Source: Rhodosorus marinus CCMP1338 (Eukaryota > Plantae > Rhodophyta). Taken from it: 64,000 nt of DNA. Location of the stretch: contig JAMWBK010000006.1 of assembly GCA_029953675.1 (NCBI GenBank), positions 2,232,001-2,296,000 of the forward strand, written 5' to 3'. A program made the position numbers and the translations under genes. The notes below the pieces were generated by a model. It did no database searches. It was not told the DNA's origin and saw nothing but the letters and a program-made list of their open reading frames with translations. Positions 43,731 through 57,530 of this stretch are shown here, one piece after another (position 1 is the first letter of the stretch; the number at the start of each line of letters is the position of its first letter).

Positions 43731-44142
43731 GAAGCTTCTGCTTCCTTTGTGGGGGAAGACGAGGAAGGTGGAATTGGGTATGGACTGCGTTTGGAAGGCT
43801 TGAGAAAGGAAGAGGAAGACTTTTGAAGGTTTGGGTTGAGCGATGATTTGGAGTTTAGAGGTTTCCTTAAGGTGAAGGAAGAGGATGGTTGAAGTGGTAG
43901 GGAAGAGAGACTATGGATTGAAACCTGGGCTTTTCTTCGGGGGTTTGTGAGGAAGGATTTTACAAGTTTGAGAAGACTTGGTATGGAATTTGGAGTTTAG
44001 GTTTTTTCGTGAAAGCGATAGGGTTGAAGAGGTTAGCAGAGAGCTTCGGTTGAGAAGATGGGTGTTTAGATATGGGATTGAGGATGTTGTGAAGTTCTGG
44101 TTCGTTTCAGTTTGTTGTTGTGGGTTTTGGGGTGAGGAGGCC

Positions 44143-47100
44143 ATGGGAGACGTTGGGGTAGAACCGACAGGACCGTGGCTGAACGGGGGTGGAGGGGAGA
44201 GATATGCGTGTTTTGTTGGTGAAGATATTGACTTGAAGGGGATATTGGGAAGCGTGCTCAGCGTTGATGATAGGTTGCGATGGAAAGCGGAAGTTGAGTT
44301 GGAGAAAGCCAAGTCGCAAAGTCCGAAAACGTTTTTGTGTGATCTTGGGAAGGTTTTTGCTGACAAGTCAGCTAATCCGGATACTCGCAGGTTAGCTGGG
44401 ATTATTCTCAAGAACTCCTTAACAGGTTGTGTTGGGGACTTTGTCAATACAACGTGCTTTCAGGGGCTGGTGGAGAACATATTTTCCGTATTGCACAGTG
44501 ATATTCAGCCTGTCAGAAGATGCGCTTCTCAGCTGGCCGCAGAGTTGGCTTCATATGAGATACATAGCGGACTAGCGAGGGATACTTTATCGCTGTTGAT
44601 TTCTAGCGCTGCTTCAGACCAGCTGAGCCCCACACTTGTCGAGGTATGGGAAGATGGAAGCCACCGCTTGTCGAAGGAGTCGGCAATTTGAAACGCTTAC
44701 GGAAAAATCTATCGTTCGATATGGCCAGGCCTGCCTGGAGGCAATTGGATTTATCAGCGAGGAGCTGATATCGAAGCACGGCAAGACTACACCTATACTG
44801 CTGGATCAAACGCTTCCGATTCTTGAGGTAGTCGTTGGCAGGTAAACTACATGCTCGATTTCACAAGCCGTTTTCCCTTGCACGGCCGGACACTGATGAG
44901 AAATTCTCCTGCTTCCCATACGGAATTTGGGAAAACCGGCAAACGTTTGATAGAATACGAAACGCTCCGACATGGGAGGTGCAACTGAAGGCGAGCAATA
45001 CGCTCTTCTTCCTGCTGGATTTTCTCTCCGGACCTCTTGGGAACAGAGAGAGGTTGACGGAGATCATGGAGATTTTGTTCACTTTGGCGGATTCAAGAAA
45101 TATGGAGGTTCGATTGTCGGCTTTCCACTGTCTTGTTTATGTAAGTACTAGGCACTGAACACGGGATGGTCTCGCTTGTTGGAGCGGTATGGCTTGTCCA
45201 AACGCCTGGATAGAGAGCTCATGTGGATGACCGCAAACTGATAAGGATCGAGCGTAGCTAGACGGTTAGAGTGGTTGACCTGAGTTGTAGGTCAGCATAG
45301 TTGGATGAGCTTTCCCAGTCTGATCGCGATGGTGGTTCTTCTCATTGGTACGCTGTTTGCAGCTGGCTGGATCGATTTACACAGAGCTGTCTCCGTTTAT
45401 TGAGAGGATTTTTGCGAAAGCAGAGCGTGCGATTTTATATGACGAGGAACCGCCTGCCCTACAGGCGCTAGAATTCTGGAGCACTTTGGCGAGCGTGGAG
45501 ATTGATAACCTGGAGAATGTGAGTGCTTCAGCAAGCGACTTTGGCAACAGAAAAGCTCTTCTTCTGAACCTGCATTCGTTCCGCATGTTCTAGTTGGCTT
45601 CTGAGGAGGGAAGCTACGTGCTAACCCACGGAAAGTTCGAATCCTTGATTGCACCGGTCGCCAAACGGCTGTGCTATGTTTTGTTGAACTGCTTAATGCG
45701 ACAAGAAGAGTATCAGGTACGTTCCCAACCACTGGAAAGTTTCAGAACGCAGTCTCCGGAGCGGTTCTGGTCTAAGGATACTCTTTCTCTCCTTGGTTGC
45801 AGGATGAAGACACATGGAATAAGGCTGCTGCCGCGCGAGTATGTCTTGGCTTACTCTCCCGGGTTGCGCCGAGCACTGTGATTGAATATGTGGCACCGTT
45901 TATATCGGAGAACGTGATGGATGAGAATAGCTGGAGGAGGCGCGAGGCATCCACAATGGCTTTGGGGATTATCGCTGTTGATGCAATGCCAGCCGTGCTT
46001 GAGGATATCGTGAATGAGGTACGTACGGAAACGGTGTAGCGTTTCCGCTGCATGAAGATGGAACAGTTAGCTGAGGCTGAACTTTTCCATTCTTTCGCTA
46101 CATCGTCAATGTCTTTGCCGAAAAGAGTTTGCCGTTTTTACTGATGGGCCTCCTACACGACGAGTGTCTTGCTGTTAGGGAGACAACTGCTCTGACTTTG
46201 TCCAAGATTTGTAAAGTTTCGAAAGCGGCCTGCACATCGTACGAGGGTTTTCTCCATATGTCTTGCTTGCTTTACCAGGGGATGCGTTGGTCTTAAGACT
46301 TTCATGCTTCTGCGCTCTCATTTGCTCAATGTTAAGGTACTTCTCTGAGCTAGCTCAAAATCTATCCACTGCCTTGCGTGATGATGAGTCTGTAGCAAAG
46401 CACGCCTGCAGAGGGTTGTACAATCTAGCGGACTTTTACAGATTTGCGGACGGGGTGACAGAATCTGAGCTTGCATCTCTCGCTCAGGTGTTCAAACCAC
46501 TCATGATGGAGCTGTTTAGTTTGGCCGATCGCTCGTCCGTGGAACGAGAAGGTTTGAAGGGACTTGCTTTTCGCTCGATTGGAAACTATGTTGATTGTGC
46601 TCCAGAGAGTTGTCTGCCGATCGTCAGCGAAGTTGCCACTGCGCTCCTGGAGCGACTGCTTGTGTTGAGGAAGGACCGCCCGCTCTCGCCGAACGAGAGG
46701 GCAGGTATTATCTACGCTCAAGGCATATTGATGGTATCACTCACTCGATATTTGAGCAGGGTGAATCCGGGCAACACGGGGCTGGTATTCAAAGCCAAGG
46801 ATCGAGCCCTGGAATTTATCATTCATAACTCCGATGATACGTTGACCGAAAAAGCTTTGAAATTGTTGGCGGTAATCGAGAAGAACCTCAAAGCTGATGC
46901 GAACGGTATCAGTGAACAAATCGCTCCAACTGTGCTCGCACTTATCAACACCGGCAGAAATGGTTCGGTACGGGTTCGCTTCATGAGGGCCTTGGCAGGG
47001 GACTAATCTACCACCGCTATTGGTTGTTCACAGAGCTCACCCTGGTCAACTTCCGCTCTTTCGCATTCTCCGATTTTCCAGATTGCGGCAGGAACAATGT

Positions 47101-48361: not shown

Positions 48362-48570
48362 GAAAACAACAGGTGCATTCCTAGTACAGTTTGATTCGTA
48401 CTACCACACACTAAGAAACGCGGACATCATCCAAATTCCACGAAAAAAGAATCGCTTGCGCACTCTGAAACAACAAGTGCATTCCTAGTACAGTTTGATT
48501 CGTACTATCACACACTCAGAAACGCGGGCATCAGCCAAATTCCGCAAAAAAAGAATCGCTTGCGTACTCT
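48362..48570. repeat. Tandem duplication (2 x ~104 nt) containing the last 10 nt of tRNA-His, its terminator and downstream flank
   Basis: Copies 48362-48466 and 48467-48570 are near-identical (gaaa(a)caacaRgtgcattcctagtacagtttgattcgtacta...aagaatcgcttgcgYactct). Confidence 0.92.
48546..48552 (-). terminator. RNA polymerase III terminator (T7 run) of tRNA-His
   Basis: TTTTTTT on the minus strand, 8 nt after the tRNA discriminator base. Confidence 0.75.
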
Positions 48571-48632
48571 CAGAATCGAACTGAGGTTTTCACGGCCACA
48601 ACGTGAGGTCCTAACCACTAGACGAAGTACGC
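48561..48632 (-). tRNA. tRNA-His (GUG), intronless
   Basis: GCGTACT/AGTACGC acceptor stem, D-loop TAGTGGTTAGGAC, anticodon arm TCACG-TTGTGGC-CGTGA, T-arm CTCAG-TTCGATT-CTGAG, discriminator A; 72 nt. Confidence 0.97.
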
Positions 48633-51550: not shown

Positions 51551-52876
51551 ATCTATCCTCAGTGCTTCTTTTCTCTGCTGAAGGTCGCCTTGGCCGTTGT
51601 CTCAGACCGTACCTAAGTAAAGACAGCCTGGTTCAAGAGTCTCAACAATATCAATTCAATGTGAACTCCAAATTGGATTTCAGTGAACATTCGCCTCTGT
51701 TGGGAAGGCTACTGCTCGTTGTTACGGTCGAGAGGCGTTGATCGAAGGAGGTTTCCCGTTGTTGGTATGTTAGAATCATCATCTATGTGGGAGTAGAGTT
51801 GTTTGTATTCGGAAGATATAGTGTGTGAGGCGGAGAAATGTGAGATCTGTGGAACACCATGGTACAGCGGGATCCGATAGGGTAGTCATTGTTTCGCGTT
51901 TACTGCGCAATTCCAGGAACCGCAATGAGGGAATTCTGAATCTTAAAGAGGCCCTTCGTCGTTTGTTTTATGGTCTAAAGAGGTTTGCTCCAATGAACAT
52001 AGAACCCGGTTTACCGACAGAGTCGGAATGCAACGTAGAACAAGCCCCTCGAAAGCTAACCGCGTTCTCACCAGTTCCATCTCGTGACCATACAGATCAA
52101 AAAGCAACCCAGCAAACCTAGATGACGCGCTGCGGCGCATCAAAATGGTTAATCATGCACACCCCAAAAACCCTCTTTCCATGCAATATTTAGTAAGGCG
52201 ACGGAAACCAAAACTATGCATTTCCTGCTTGTTTTCTATATATAGAATTTAAAATTTCCCACACGTCACAGTTACGTTCATACCTCTCGAACATGCACCC
52301 GATCCTATCTCAAATTCGGAAGTTAAGCTCGAACGGGCCTGGAGAGCACTGAGGTCAGGGATGACTCGGGAACGCCAGGTGACGTACCTTTTTCACTTTT
52401 TTGCTCAAATTTTTTTTTGTTCTGCATTCCAGCACGACGATCGGAAGTAAGTTCGTAGAACTGTGCGAGATCACTTCATGCACCTCAGTCTGGACAGAGT
52501 CGACTCGTGCTTGACAGTGTGCGGTTTTGGCCTGTTGCTTATGGTGACTGTTCATCTGGATGAGTGGAACTCTTTGATGAACACTGGGAAAGGGTAATTG
52601 ATAAAAGGCGGTTAGAAATTCTCTCAGAGGGGCCTGCTTTGCATGTCCTGCTCGAGGAGAGGAGGAGGGCGGACGTCGAAGATTTTTGATCCGAGATTCG
52701 CTCATGGCGATTCGATTATAGTCTTCTTAGTTGGACGGGAGCCGAACATGAATCGATGAGCCATGGTTGTTTTACGAATCAGCGAGCGTTGAGGCTTTCT
52801 CCAAGAATGAGTTTCTAGCAGGCTGATTTTGAGCTTGTGGTTAGACTAGAAAGGTGTGGAGGAGAAAGTGAAAGAC

Positions 52877-54864
52877 ATGGGAGGATCTTCTCGAAACTTG
52901 AAAGCAGAGAATGCGCATAAAGATGGAAGTGGTAGAACAAGATCTGAACGTCTGTCCAACGCCCATCCCGTAGTATATAGTGAGCTGGTTGACTCTCTCG
53001 CTGCAGATGAAGGCCATTGGTGTATGTTTTTACGGGATGGCGTAGAAGGAGACGTCAAGTTTGGGAAAACCATTAGGCGTTCGGAGTATGGAAGAGTTCC
53101 TCTCGGACCTGTCGTGGTGGAGGAGCAGGAGGAATTGCTAATGACATGGATTGAAACCAAGCTGGATATCAAACTGGATCATTCTCAACCTCTCGCGTAC
53201 GCGCTTACTAGTGGAATAGTTTTGAGATTTCTTACAAATGGCGAAGCGTGGGTTCCCTCCGCAACTCTCGAGGGACCATGGGAAGGGAACGACTCTGCTG
53301 AGACGCGCCTGGACAGGCGGGAGTTACGGAGGCTTAGGAGGCAGGAACGCAAGGACGGAGTAAAAGTGAAAGGGAGCAAAGCGTTTCTTCGATCTATGGG
53401 AGTCTGGGAAGAAAGGAGAATACCCCTTCCGTACTCCTACTACACCTGCGTAAGGGGGATCTCTCTGTTCCTTCAGCACCTGCGCAATATCGGCATGGAT
53501 TCCAATGAGATGTTCGAATTCGACGATTTACTGTACTATAGAAACATTCCAAAAGTGATGAGATGCATCGCCGCATATGCGAGGAAGACGGACTACGAAA
53601 ATTTTGCCCAAATCGCGAATCAAGTGCCTGGAGCGGTTCTGAATTGGACTCAGGAAGATGAACCCAATGAGAGATGGGAGAATGACCGAATGCTTTCAGA
53701 TCTCGTCTTGGCGTTCAAGAAGGCGTCCACGAAGAAGCGCCTGAGTGTTTTGGTAGCCGGGGCAATGGGCAGCGGTAAAAGCGCGACCATTGAGACCATT
53801 ATGGGAAGAAGGTCAATGGCCCATCGACACAAGCTCAACTTGATTACTGAGGATTACCACTTCACTCCCGAAGAGATTCTAGAAAGAAAAAAAAAGCGCG
53901 ATCTTATGAGCGATCCGCTCCTGAGGTTTAAATTGGATGCTGGAAAAAACCCCAACGCGGAAGTATCCAAAATTTATACGAAAATGCATGGAATCGCAGT
54001 CTCAATTACCGAAGTTCCCGGTATGGAAGAGTACATTGCAGGGTCAGCCGATGGGAACTGTCTTATACGTGCACGAGCGGGAGATTTTGAGGGCGTGCGG
54101 AAGTCAATTGCTCATGACAGGTTCGAGCCCTGGATGTCCTACTTTGATCCTAAGAGGTGGCCCTGATTCCGTTTGGGATCTGAACTCTCCGTTTCCCCTC
54201 ACAGGTACGACCTAGTCCTTGTTGTTGACCGAATAGATGACTACAACCCAAATCGTACTTTAACAGCGTGTAGAAGTCTTTCCGCATTATTTGGGCCGCG
54301 AGTCTTTGACTACTGTTTGTTCATCTTTACGCACGGATCTTCTCTCCCGCCTGCGGATTTGACGTACACTGAGCACCGATCACGCTGCGTGCAAGCCTCC
54401 CTGGAGGTTGCGAACAAGGTATGTTGACTGCACGCAATCACTTTGAGTAAATCAACCCCAGCGCGTAGTAGCGGAGGACTGATGCTTCTGGAGCTTGCTC
54501 TGGAAAATCAGTTTGCTGCAGGTGCAGGTGGTCAATTGTTTCCATCTGCAGTAATCGAAAACAGCAAGTCCTGCCCACAGGACAGTAAGACCGGAAGCCC
54601 GATCCTGCCGGACGGATCAGACTTCCTCCCCCGCCTTCATCGAGCTATGGAGACAGTCCTGCTCTCTCAGCACGGATTGCCTTCGCTCGTGCCCGTAAGC
54701 ACTTCAAAAATACGTTCTCCTGCTGGCGATGGTTTCGCGAAGGCCTCTTCTCACCGACCCTTGCTGTTGTGCCTGTCAACAAATGTCAGAAACGAAAACG
54801 ACCTTGGTGGGAGTCTTGGGTTCTCGGGGGCGTGGCGTTGTGGATAGTTACCTTTGGGCTCTAA
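52877..54864 (+). CDS. Calponin-homology domain fused to a Toc34/Toc159-type (AIG1-like) GTPase with C-terminal hydrophobic anchor; 3' end may extend
   Basis: CH domain: 'LLMTWIETKL...LAYALTSGIVL...RGISLFLQHLRNIGM...FEFDDLL..RNIPKVMRCI'. GTPase: 'VLVAGAMGSGKSATIETIMG', 'ITEVPG', 'DLVLVVDRIDDY', 'LFGPRVFDYCLFIFTHG..LPPADLTY', 'VIENSKSC...ILPDGSDFLPRL'. Tail: 'KRKRPWWESWVLGGVALWIV'. Confidence 0.8.
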
Positions 54865-56231
54865 GCCCCCCAAAATTCTTGCCTCACTAATCTTACTGTA
54901 CAGAAACAGGATTGAACAGAAGGAAATTCGAATACTGAACGCATTCGCTACCTTTCTTGCCAATACTCACCCTATTCAACTCACGTGCAGGAGAGAATCT
55001 GTTCGACTTCCATACGTGTAGAGTCTCCAAGCAGAGGCTCTGCCTTCAGGCAATCAGGGTCAACTTAGGCCCTCCCCTTGCCAAAACACCTCGCCAGTTC
55101 AAGGAGCCTTTGGGAAGAGCGAGCGATCAAGGGGCTCCTCCGGGTTGGACTCCCGTCCCTTTCCGTGCTTAGTGGCTCCTAAAAACCTTCCCTCGTCCAG
55201 CCGTTCCGCATAGACTTGGAGAACAGAAAAACAGCAGAGGATAGATACTCGCGCGGTCTTGTACTGAAATGGAGTTCTCCTGTGCTTCGTCTCTACCTGG
55301 CTTTCAAACCTCGGCACTCTACAGACCTCCGAAGTCCAGTGCTGAGAAATATCTTCGGCTCCGATCAAGATTAGTCTACTGCGTTAAAAGGTGGGAGTGG
55401 GGTTCATGTGCAAGAATTTTAAGTTCAGACGCATGTCAAGCATCCGCAAACGCGGAAAGGGCCTCCATATCCAGGCCCACGAACACCCAGCGTGCTTCCG
55501 TTCCGCACCCGTGCTTTGCCCTTGAAGACTTTAGTGTCAGCACGAAAAAGATTGATTCAATCAAAAATATTTGACTGAATTCAATCGACAAAATGAGCGG
55601 GGGGTTGTTGCCTACAAGAGCGGGAACAGGACAGACGACACTCTCGGACTCTTAGCATCGTTTCTGGAGTTCGTGAAGGACTCTTTAGGCTTGTTGCTCT
55701 TCTGTTCGCTTCATTTGTTCGGAAAAATGTCACGGAAAACTCGTCGAACTAAACGGCCAGGCCATTCTCCCGATGCTTGATGCACACGGTGGGTTGGGAG
55801 GCCGGGAGATCTCCCGATTACCGCGTGGACGTGTAGATACTTTGGGTGCATACCCTCGAGTCTGCTTCACTACGCAGCTCCCCGCAATGAATACTCCTGA
55901 TGTACCAATTGAAGCGAGTAGTGTGTTTTCTGATACTCGTGCCGTGTGAAAGTCCGTCATCGATTTCGCAGGGGAGTCTGTTCATCACCTGGCTTAGCCA
56001 ACAATCCAGCAAGCATCATAGAGGGAATTGTAACGGAGGGTTCGGTAAGGTCTGGAGCAGATTTTCCAGCCTAAGGCAGGACGTGGATCAAAATCTGGTC
56101 TGGGTCTATGGTTTTCAGACTACTTACTGGGAACTGGTCTTGGGGATACACTTGACTGAGCTGGGGTGCGAGCCGTACTGGTCTTGCTACAGGGCAACAT
56201 TCCCTGCGTTTGGTTTTCCTTTTTTAATACA

Positions 56232-57530
56232 ATGAGTCGGAGGGAAGTGCAGACTTTGAGAGCTGGTTCTCGCAATTTGCTGGCACCAGACGTGCCTGAA
56301 GATTGCCGTTCTGAAACGTTCCAGAGAAGCAAGCGAAGCGGTCGTCTGTGCATGCCTGTGCTCCAGTTCTGGAGAAATGAAACTGTTGAAAGGTCCCTAG
56401 TTGGAGTGATTGGGGTAACACGGCCTGGAACTCAAGATTTTAATAGCGATGAGCTAAAGAGAATACGAAACAGTGGTGAACTAGAACACTCAAGTAAAAG
56501 CTCTCTGACGCCAGTTGGCTCAGCTGGTAGGAAACATGAACGTGAGACGGCATCAGTTACTGGGAGGGTGCGGTCAGGTGAGATTGAGGTGGGAAGCCCA
56601 GCACATCAGAGCAAGCTTGGGGCCAAATCTGCAGAGGAGAGTGGATTGACCGGTTCTGGTATTGACCGTAGAAAAGAATCAATTGGATGGAGATCACATC
56701 GCCGCGAACCGACATCCGAGCATTCCGATCAGAGACGGCATGTGACCAAAAGACGGAGGCGAGGGGTGGGACGAATAGCAGCGACTGAGGGAGAAGGCCC
56801 AAGCGACCTGGATCAATTCAGACGCGGCCGGTTTCTGCGAAAGCGAAATAGAATAGCCCCTCCCGTGGCCTCCACAAGCAACCGAACAGAAAGCCAGACG
56901 TCCGTGACAAGGCTCAAACCCGGAAGTCCTGAGCAAATTCCGCCTAATTTCACACCTCGAAACCAATACCGGAGGCCTTTCAATGGACACGAGAATGATC
57001 TGCATCTCCGCCACGGAATGGTTAGCCTGACCCCGACTACGTCCTCACTAACCTTGCGAACTCCAGAATCTGATAACAATCGATGCATGAAGCGATCGGA
57101 GGACAATGCTGCAGTAATCATCGGCCCTCCGTCTGTGCTGGATGCCACACCGCCCAGCGTATTAATTGAAACATGCAAAGATGGAAGCGATGAAAAGAAT
57201 GACTTGGCTGGAGAGGAACCTGTAACAATAGGCCCTCCTCCAGCCCTTGATGTCAGGCCCATATTTGTTTCTGTTCAGACGGTGAAGCAAACCGACAGAC
57301 TGGCGCATAGCCACACGTCAAAGGGTTGTGTCCCGGAGCCCGAAGCTGAACGAGGCAGGCGATCGATTATCCGCGACAGGCTAAGAATCCTCTTCGAACA
57401 TGTCAAGTCTGCTGTTCGCCGACACCCAAACTCGAATCTACTCATTGAAACCAGTCGCTCTCCGAATTGCAATCACGGCGGAAACGTACCAGGTGAGATC
57501 TCTGAGAGCGATGAGGAAAGCTTCAGATGA
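56232..57530 (+). CDS. Hypothetical low-complexity, R/S-rich disordered protein (may continue into downstream exons)
   Basis: 432-codon ATG-initiated open frame with an internal duplicated motif 'IGPPSVLD'/'IGPPPALD'. Confidence 0.6.
   Translation: MSRREVQTLRAGSRNLLAPDVPEDCRSETFQRSKRSGRLCMPVLQFWRNETVERSLVGVIGVTRPGTQDFNSDELKRIRNSGELEHSSKSSLTPVGSAGRKHERETASVTGRVRSGEIEVGSPAHQSKLGAKSAEESGLTGSGIDRRKESIGWRSHRREPTSEHSDQRRHVTKRRRRGVGRIAATEGEGPSDLDQFRRGRFLRKRNRIAPPVASTSNRTESQTSVTRLKPGSPEQIPPNFTPRNQYRRPFNGHENDLHLRHGMVSLTPTTSSLTLRTPESDNNRCMKRSEDNAAVIIGPPSVLDATPPSVLIETCKDGSDEKNDLAGEEPVTIGPPPALDVRPIFVSVQTVKQTDRLAHSHTSKGCVPEPEAERGRRSIIRDRLRILFEHVKSAVRRHPNSNLLIETSRSPNCNHGGNVPGEISESDEESFR

Follow-up and report, generated by a model that had tools for sequence, protein, structure and literature searches.

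A calponin-homology domain joined to a TOC-type GTPase in red algae: a candidate adaptor at the plastid surface

The stretch of DNA considered here (the window) comprises 64,000 nucleotides of the red alga Rhodosorus marinus CCMP1338 (contig JAMWBK010000006.1, positions 2,232,001 to 2,296,000) and contains a four-exon gene on the forward strand whose product joins an N-terminal calponin-homology (CH) domain, an acidic and aromatic linker, a TOC-type G domain and a predicted C-terminal membrane anchor. This architecture of CH domain, TOC-type G domain and tail anchor had been proposed in a preliminary description made from the sequence, and profile, motif and fold evidence now supports it. We refer to the gene as the CH-Toc34-like gene; its features and those of its surroundings are given in Table 1.

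The gene begins at an in-frame ATG (52877) within an uninterrupted open reading frame (ORF) spanning 52856-54166 (+), so that, as first described, a single frame carries the CH domain and the start of the GTPase through to the end of exon 1. We derived the gene model by enumerating GT/AG combinations downstream of this ORF and retaining canonical sites. The spliced product of the four exons (52877-54864, +) is 571 amino acids long and matches the NCBI entry 'hypothetical protein NDN08_000946 [Rhodosorus marinus]' with 100% identity over 100% of its length, and the exon structure agrees with the public annotation. Two loci from relatives, L006 (a partly unspliced MMETSP transcript) and L007 (a genomic Logan contig), show the same four coding blocks with three introns at matching positions, and in both the last small exon encodes KRKRPWWE(S/A)WV..., as in Rhodosorus. 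L006, which encodes the relative P0003, retains the equivalents of introns 2 and 3 at 1625-1677 and about 1852-1940, which explains the frame-shifted C-terminus of the predicted P0003 protein.

Table 1. Coding exons, domains and motifs of the CH-Toc34-like gene, and neighbouring features (positions within the window; residues of the 571-residue product).
Feature	Position	Strand	Residues	Remarks
Exon 1	52877..54120	+	1-414, plus 2 nt of codon 415	N-terminal region, CH domain, linker, G domain through G3; GT donor at 54121
Exon 2	54205..54418	+	415/416-486	DRIDDYN, THGSSLPP; AG acceptor 54203-54204, AAG/GTATGT donor
Exon 3	54512..54694	+	487-547	VIENSKSC, ILPDGSDFLPRL
Exon 4	54790..54864	+	548-571, plus TAA	KRKR, then hydrophobic predicted tail anchor
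Region before CH domain	52877..53113	+	1-79	KDGSGRTR..LSN ... LA.DEG.WC.F.R
CH domain, type 3 (predicted)	53114..53590	+	about 80-238	split by lineage-specific insertion; family profile, AF2, Foldseek, Pfam
Charged insertion in CH domain	53261..53428	+	about 129-184	about 55 residues, between CH helices C and E; low-pLDDT segment in AF2 model
Acidic/aromatic linker	53645..53686	+	257-270	W-x3-DEP-x-E-x-W-x2-D, between CH and G domains
G1/P-loop	53759..53788	+	295-304	GAMGSGKSAT
Switch I insertion	53813..53971	+	about 313-365	about 45 residues, family-wide, between G1 and G3
G3	54011..54022	+	379-382	EVPG, not DTPG
DRIDDYN motif	54227..54247	+	423-429	Asn429 at Toc34 arginine-finger position (pairwise alignment with pea Toc34, 1h65)
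G4 equivalent	54329..54340	+	457-460	THGS, aligned to Toc34 THAQ
G5/TOC signature	54557..54574	+	502-507	ENSKSC
Toc34-type LP(N/D)G motif	54605..54637	+	518-528	LPDGSDFLPRL; alignments
Predicted tail anchor	54790..54861	+	548-551 and 553-571	KRKR, then hydrophobic WWESWVLGGVALWIVTFGL; Kyte-Doolittle, Toc34 alignment
5S rRNA gene, complete	52270..52390	+		Rfam RF00001, 72 bits, E 3e-13
tRNA gene	48561..48632	-		Rfam RF00005, 59 bits
Importin-beta-like ORF pieces (two)	43978..47006	+		IBN_N at 43978-44688, TPR_IMB1/HEAT at 46263-47003
Candidate ORF	56166..57530	+		454 aa, Ser/Arg/Glu/Pro-rich; no Pfam match

In order to place the Rhodosorus protein among its relatives, we ran an exhaustive HMMER search of 1.84 billion representative sequences, which returned 390 matches. 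In the top ~25 of these (P0005-P0028, E 1e-97 to 1e-16), the match takes in the latter half of the CH domain, the G domain and the C-terminal anchor; those below them cover only pieces of the G domain. Members that carry an organism name, about seven of the ~25 representatives, all come from red algae, and the family covers at least four classes: Cyanidiophyceae (Cyanidium caldarium, Cyanidiococcus yangmingshanensis), Florideophyceae (Agarophyton chilense), Porphyridiophyceae (Porphyridium purpureum) and Stylonematophyceae (Purpureofilum apyrenoidigerum, besides Rhodosorus marinus). The relatives P0002-P0004 found in our searches share 50-55% identity with the Rhodosorus protein. Word-indexed searches started from the family alignment and from the Cyanidiococcus protein added almost nothing new: they returned no named C. 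merolae orthologue, and one weak match was to a fungal CH-domain kinase. The CH-TOC fusion is the norm among the red-algal TOC-like GTPases recovered here. Far from being the isolated case that the preliminary description had suggested, the architecture recurs in ~25 representatives across red algae. As for its novelty, we found no description of it in the searched literature, and yet it was already visible in automatic names, since UniRef calls the two cyanidiophyte members 'Calponin-homology (CH) domain-containing protein'.

The nature of the N-terminal module emerges most clearly at the level of the family. A profile built from 22 N-terminal regions and run against the PDB matched the calponin CH domain 1h67 at E 7.1e-11, covering residues 2-104 of 108, and went on to match calponin-1, Rng2/IQGAP (8e-10), Vav3, transgelin-2, calponin-2, GAS2, Vav1, PIX and IQGAP1. 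These CH matches span E 7e-11 to 1e-3; the top 16 are CH domains only, and the next fold appears at E 0.3. Individually, 8 of the 22 N-terminal regions match the Pfam CH model (best E 5.7e-10). An AlphaFold (AF2) model of residues 62-285 computed from the 22-sequence alignment has a predicted local distance difference test score (pLDDT) of 78.8 and a predicted template-modelling score of 0.70, with core helices above 90. By comparison, a full-length model from four sequences (pLDDT 43, N-terminus below 50) was uninformative, including for residues 1-79. When the AF2 model was compared with the PDB using Foldseek, the top 22 matches were again CH domains only, among them transgelin, IQGAP1, Rng2, transgelin-2, GAS2-CH3 on F-actin, calponins, Vav and parvin, with probabilities of 0.75-1.00 (about 1.0 for the first dozen). 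Target-normalised template-modelling (TM) scores ranged from 0.15 to 0.65, with single-domain CH targets at 0.52-0.65 and two full-length Vav1 entries at 0.15-0.16. The Foldseek E-values are only about 1e-2 or weaker, because the long insertion in the CH domain spoils the superposition. Judged by profile match and predicted fold, the N-terminal module is, at family level, a bona fide type-3 (calponin/IQGAP-like) CH domain.

We also considered a CH domain of the microtubule-binding kind (EB1/Ndc80) and dropped it, as neither the profile search of the PDB nor Foldseek returned any EB1-, Ndc80- or CLAMP-type CH domain.

The CH domain of the Rhodosorus protein is interrupted by a charged insertion of about 55 residues that is found in P0001, P0002 and P0004 and is absent from most family members in the full-length alignment (A3); Porphyridium and one further member carry different insertions at the same position. 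Strong conservation of residues 1-79, the region that precedes the CH domain, is confined to P0001-P0004 (Rhodosorus, Purpureofilum and two further relatives) and does not extend to other red-algal classes.

Between the two domains lies one of the best conserved stretches of the whole family, the linker W..DE.DE.W.GD (at residues 257-270, W..(Q/E)DEP.E.W..D). Its residues E265 and W267 (E204 and W206 in the numbering of the N-terminal alignment, A4) are invariant in A4, and W257, E265 and W267 are nearly invariant in A3. In the AF2 model the linker has a pLDDT of 78-94, dropping to 78 across residues 262-271. The linker may serve as a latch between the two domains or as a motif for binding.

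The G domain of the Rhodosorus protein, taken alone, matches the Pfam AIG1 family with 31.3 bits against a cut-off of 27; among solved structures it lies closest to pea Toc34 (E 1.8e-11), Arabidopsis Toc33 and Chlamydomonas Toc34. With a four-sequence profile, pea Toc34 rose to E 2.5e-16 and GIMAP proteins reached 2e-4 or worse. The Toc34 motifs follow one another in order and align with their counterparts: DRIDDYN pairs with DRLDAYR of Toc34 (placing Asn429 opposite the arginine), VIENSKSC with LIENSGRC, THGSSLPPADLTY with THAQFSPPDGLPY, and ILPDGSDFLPRL with VLPNGIAWIPHL. At the C-terminus, KRKR is followed by 17-19 hydrophobic residues that close the protein (best 17-residue Kyte-Doolittle window 1.48) and align with the transmembrane segment of Toc34, suggesting a membrane anchor; across the family this tail takes the form (K/R)RWWExY plus a hydrophobic stretch. 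The preliminary description had read all of this correctly: the ordered Toc34 motifs, the EVPG in place of DTPG at G3, the Asn in place of the dimerisation arginine (pea R133), the basic and hydrophobic anchor, and the charged insertions in both domains (about 55 residues in the CH domain and about 45 in the G domain) were each recovered.

To ask which of these features belong to the family as a whole, we counted alignment columns over 26 family members and read the full-length alignment of 23 sequences. The residues expected of a nucleotide-binding site are retained: P-loop G295, G298, G300 and K301 and the histidine of T-H-G (H458) are invariant in the 23 sequences, the P-loop lysine is present in 26 of 26, and ENS (E502, N503, S504) is kept in 23-24 of 26. 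The switch region is another matter. The first residue of G3 is Glu in all 26 members, as against Asp in 81 of 84 other TOC/AIG1 proteins; the second is hydrophobic and not Thr; the Pro is kept (E379 and P381 are invariant); and the fourth is Ser in 20 members, Ala in three, Gly in two and Glu in one. At the arginine-finger column only 6 of the 26 members have Arg, including the cyanidiophyte sequences P0010 and P0012, as against 20 of 24 Toc34 proteins. Two insertions, one in the switch I region (~45 residues) and a shorter one after G3, are family-wide; Toc34 and Toc159 proteins have no match at positions 35-120 of the family hidden Markov model (HMM), and the alignment with Lactuca Toc34 agrees on the insertion. 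The insertions in the two domains differ in age, the one in the G domain being family-wide and the one in the CH domain lineage-specific.

Scores and signature motifs separate the family from AIG1 proteins at large. Over the C-terminal half of the G domain, Toc34- and Toc159-like proteins score 80-105 bits and AIG1-repeat proteins 10-20 bits. The motifs (D/E)RxD and ENSxxC are common to the family, Toc34 and Toc159-like proteins and nearly absent from AIG1-repeat proteins; the Cys of ENSxxC (the Cys507 column) is found in 22 of 26 family members, 22 of 24 Toc34 and 25 of 27 Toc159-like proteins, versus 2 of 33 AIG1-repeat proteins. The nearest representatives outside the family are Lactuca Toc34, proteins of Chlorokybus, Mesostigma and Cymbomonas, and a 1082-amino-acid Cyanophora protein. 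On this sequence evidence the G domain is classed as TOC-type, short of the DTPG and the arginine finger that are canonical in Toc34. In a neighbour-joining (NJ) tree of 98-110 G domains, with bootstraps computed from Poisson distances, the family was monophyletic in 100 of 100 replicates.

The Cyanophora paradoxa protein (P0037) is the closest TOC-type protein of a glaucophyte. It carries the G domain and anchor at its very C-terminal end, in a Toc34-like arrangement, preceded by an N-terminal extension of ~800 residues. Outside the green lineage, it is thus a further case of a Toc34-type GTPase with a non-canonical N-terminal addition.

Set beside Toc34 and Toc33 (pea 1h65 and 3bb1, Arabidopsis Toc33, Chlamydomonas 7vcf_G), the red-algal proteins share the AIG1-fold G domain, the motifs GxxGxGKS[ST], T-H(G/A), (D/E)RxD, ENSxxC and LP(N/D)G, and a single predicted C-terminal transmembrane segment in the same position. 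They differ in adding the N-terminal CH domain and the acidic/aromatic linker, in the ~45-residue switch I insertion with G3 as E-x-P-[S/A/G] instead of DTPG, and in lacking the arginine finger in Rhodosorus (Asn429) and in 20 of 26 members overall; furthermore, the Rhodosorus protein stops right after the transmembrane segment, without an intermembrane-space tail. GIMAP/IAN proteins have the Pfam AIG1 fold in common with the family, but are much weaker relatives that lack ENSxxC and keep the canonical DTPG. The single type-3 CH domains of calponin, transgelin, IQGAP1/Rng2, Vav, PIX and GAS2 resemble the red-algal domain in a full-length profile match and the same predicted fold, whereas in the red-algal family the domain is fused to a predicted membrane-anchored G protein and, in Rhodosorus, P0002 and P0004, is split by the charged ~55-residue insertion. 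A looser parallel is offered by two plant systems: AtToc159 binds actin in vitro, and CHUP1 is an outer-envelope actin anchor of plants (PMC3355566). In concept, both present an actin-binding module to the cytosol from the outer envelope, an arrangement that the red-algal protein putatively shares. CHUP1, however, has an N-terminal anchor and no G domain and is not homologous to the red-algal family, and Toc159 has no CH domain.

Red-algal 'Toc34 homologues' have been discussed before. Baek et al. 2022 reported that CMP284C and CMQ137C of C. merolae, annotated as Toc34 homologues, did not accompany translocating preproteins and that their binding to preproteins was much weaker than that of the unrelated GTPases PTF1 and PTF3; the authors cautioned that the TOC identity of the two proteins "must be carefully examined" and proposed the unrelated GTPases PTF1-3 instead (PMC9407449). 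A 2026 septin preprint placed red-algal 'TOC33-family' proteins in its G-domain tree, including RmTOC_1 and RmTOC_2 from Rhodosorus marinus CCMP1338, and reported that the Chlamydomonas septin SEP1 contacts TOC159-family GTPases. These literature proteins (CMP284C and CMQ137C; CmTOC, GsTOC, PpTOC, RmTOC_1 and RmTOC_2) probably belong to the same family, because members from Cyanidiococcus, Cyanidium and Porphyridium were recovered here and the preprint names two Rhodosorus marinus proteins. Neither Baek et al. 2022 nor the preprint mentions a CH domain or an altered G3, and no paper in the searched literature combines "Toc34" and "calponin homology"; within that literature the CH-TOC fusion appears to be undescribed. 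The Rhodosorus genome may also hold a paralogue, the preprint listing two RmTOC proteins and the relatives found here being only 50-55% identical.

Putting these observations together, we propose that the family consists of tail-anchored, TOC-type G proteins of red algae whose type-3 CH domain makes them nucleotide-gated adaptors at the plastid surface, the CH domain docking a partner for which F-actin is the leading candidate; we give this joint reading a probability of roughly 0.4. By homology with Toc34, the C-terminal segment would anchor the protein in the outer envelope of the plastid, and the CH and G domains would then face the cytosol. The G domain would still bind guanine nucleotide, as the P-loop and H458 are invariant and ENS is kept in nearly all members. 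Its switch machinery appears to have been rebuilt, with the switch I insertion, the E-x-P-[S/A/G] form of G3 and the loss of the arginine finger from most members, and we infer from this that the protein would not cycle in the manner of a Toc34 homodimer. The CH domain may dock a cytosolic partner on the plastid surface under nucleotide control and without dimer-stimulated hydrolysis. F-actin heads the list of candidate partners because several of the closest CH relatives (IQGAP1, Rng2 and GAS2-CH3) bind it directly, and by analogy with these, F-actin binding by the red-algal CH domain is a reasonable hypothesis.

Several lines of evidence weigh against this proposal. The Rhodosorus protein on its own scores 14.5-18 bits against the Pfam CH model (PF00307), under the cut-off of 26 bits, so that the CH domain first called from this sequence stands on the family profile and fold and not on the single sequence. 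In the NJ tree, the nodes joining the family to Toc34, Toc159 or AIG1-repeat proteins have 21-35% support; of the tree check suggested at the outset, the monophyly of the family came out firmly and its position relative to these three groups did not, and because of this poorly supported deep placement the TOC affinity rests on profile scores and signature motifs. Type-3 CH domains are not uniformly actin binders: calponin can bind actin without its CH domain, and in Vav and PIX the domain has a regulatory or protein-binding role. Membership of CMP284C and CMQ137C in the CH-Toc34-like family is no more than probable. Finally, Cyanidiococcus and Cyanidium have a well conserved CH domain, and they are relatives of C. 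merolae, an alga that seemingly does not express actin, does not stain with phalloidin and lacks genes for myosin and septins (PMC7169423; the actin data are those of C. merolae itself).

The most serious alternative, which we regard as unlikely, is that the protein is a genuine red-algal Toc34 preprotein receptor in which the CH domain serves as an accessory regulatory or docking module without a cytoskeletal role. Toc34 proteins are, after all, the best solved relatives, the TOC-specific motifs and predicted tail anchor are conserved, the P-loop and H458 are invariant with ENS largely kept, Vav and PIX, whose CH domains are regulatory, figure among the nearest CH relatives, and the 2026 preprint classes the red-algal homologues as TOC33-family. 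A receptor working as Toc34 does would, however, have to accommodate a G3 in which Asp has become Glu in 26 of 26 members and Gly has been lost in 24 of 26, a large insertion in switch I, and the absence from 20 of 26 members of the arginine finger that Toc34 dimer activity needs. Moreover, in C. merolae translocating preproteins were recovered without the annotated Toc34 homologues, whose preprotein binding was weak, whereas PTF1-3 did bind (PMC9407449). Given these motif changes and the C. merolae biochemistry, we consider the role of a classical transit-peptide receptor less likely than that of an adaptor.

A second alternative, also unlikely and to our minds distinctly so, keeps the plastid-surface adaptor and replaces its partner: the CH domain would bind microtubules or a specific protein, such as a division, positioning or targeting factor. 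Single type-3 CH domains often mediate protein-protein contacts. The conservation of the domain in cyanidiophytes close to C. merolae, in which F-actin is undetectable and myosin absent (PMC7169423), points in this direction, as does the contact between TOC GTPases and the septin SEP1 in a green alga (2026 preprint). Microtubules in particular find no echo in the sequence or fold matches, from which EB1-, Ndc80- and CLAMP-type CH domains are missing, and F-actin as the partner is again suggested by the several closest matches, IQGAP1, Rng2 and GAS2-CH3, that bind it directly.

Less credible still is that the protein is a GIMAP/IAN-like, tail-anchored AIG1 GTPase of the endoplasmic reticulum (ER), mitochondria or other endomembranes, its likeness to Toc34 reflecting shared AIG1 ancestry. 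Pfam does recognise only the generic AIG1 domain (at 31.3 bits), the deep NJ nodes are poorly supported, and tail anchors are also a feature of GIMAPs, many of which carry one. Profile scores are nevertheless far higher for Toc34 and Toc159 than for GIMAP or AIG1-repeat proteins, and (D/E)RxD, ENSxxC and LP(N/D)G occur as in TOC GTPases, AIG1-repeat proteins being essentially devoid of them; that the named members, about seven of ~25, are all red algae tells slightly in the same direction. We find such a non-plastid identity highly improbable.

An artefact of gene prediction, in which a neighbouring CH-protein gene and a Toc34-like gene had been merged, is a possibility raised a priori for any multi-exon model with nothing further to recommend it, and we reject it as next to impossible, since the CH domain, linker, P-loop and G3 all fall within the single uninterrupted exon 1, which thus carries half of the G domain as well, the interdomain linker is itself conserved, and more than 20 representatives have this architecture, among them EukProt and MMETSP sequences derived from transcripts.

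The CH-Toc34-like family offers a lead on what the red-algal "Toc34" does and bears on the question of how red algae import proteins into their plastids. Its CH domain, Glu-for-Asp G3, switch I insertion and mostly missing arginine finger would together provide a concrete structural reason for the non-receptor behaviour reported for the C. merolae Toc34 homologues. The family also bears on the idea that TOC GTPases derive from, and still interact with, cytoskeletal GTPases. The adaptor reading yields hypotheses that can be tested, namely that the CH domain docks the cytoskeleton or another partner and that nucleotide gates this docking without dimer-stimulated hydrolysis. A bolder and quite doubtful extension of it is that red algae have no classical Toc34 at all, the CH fusions, with their rebuilt switch apparatus, being their only TOC-type GTPases and serving in positioning, division or cargo delivery by linking the plastid surface to the cytoskeleton, with PTF GTPases recognising transit peptides. 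If this were true, then, together with the proposed septin ancestry of TOC GTPases, coupling of the organelle to the cytoskeleton would be an older function of the TOC G domain than preprotein reception.

The surroundings of the gene hold several further features (Table 1). Downstream lies a candidate ORF on the same strand. Farther upstream, two ORF pieces with importin-beta hallmarks probably form, judging from their domain matches, one multi-exon importin-beta gene, and a tRNA gene lies between them and the CH-Toc34-like gene on the opposite strand. The 5S rRNA gene, on the same strand as the CH-Toc34-like gene and ~490 bp upstream of its start codon, is followed by T-runs and is a dispersed and not a tandem copy, as it is the single 5S copy within the 64-kb window.

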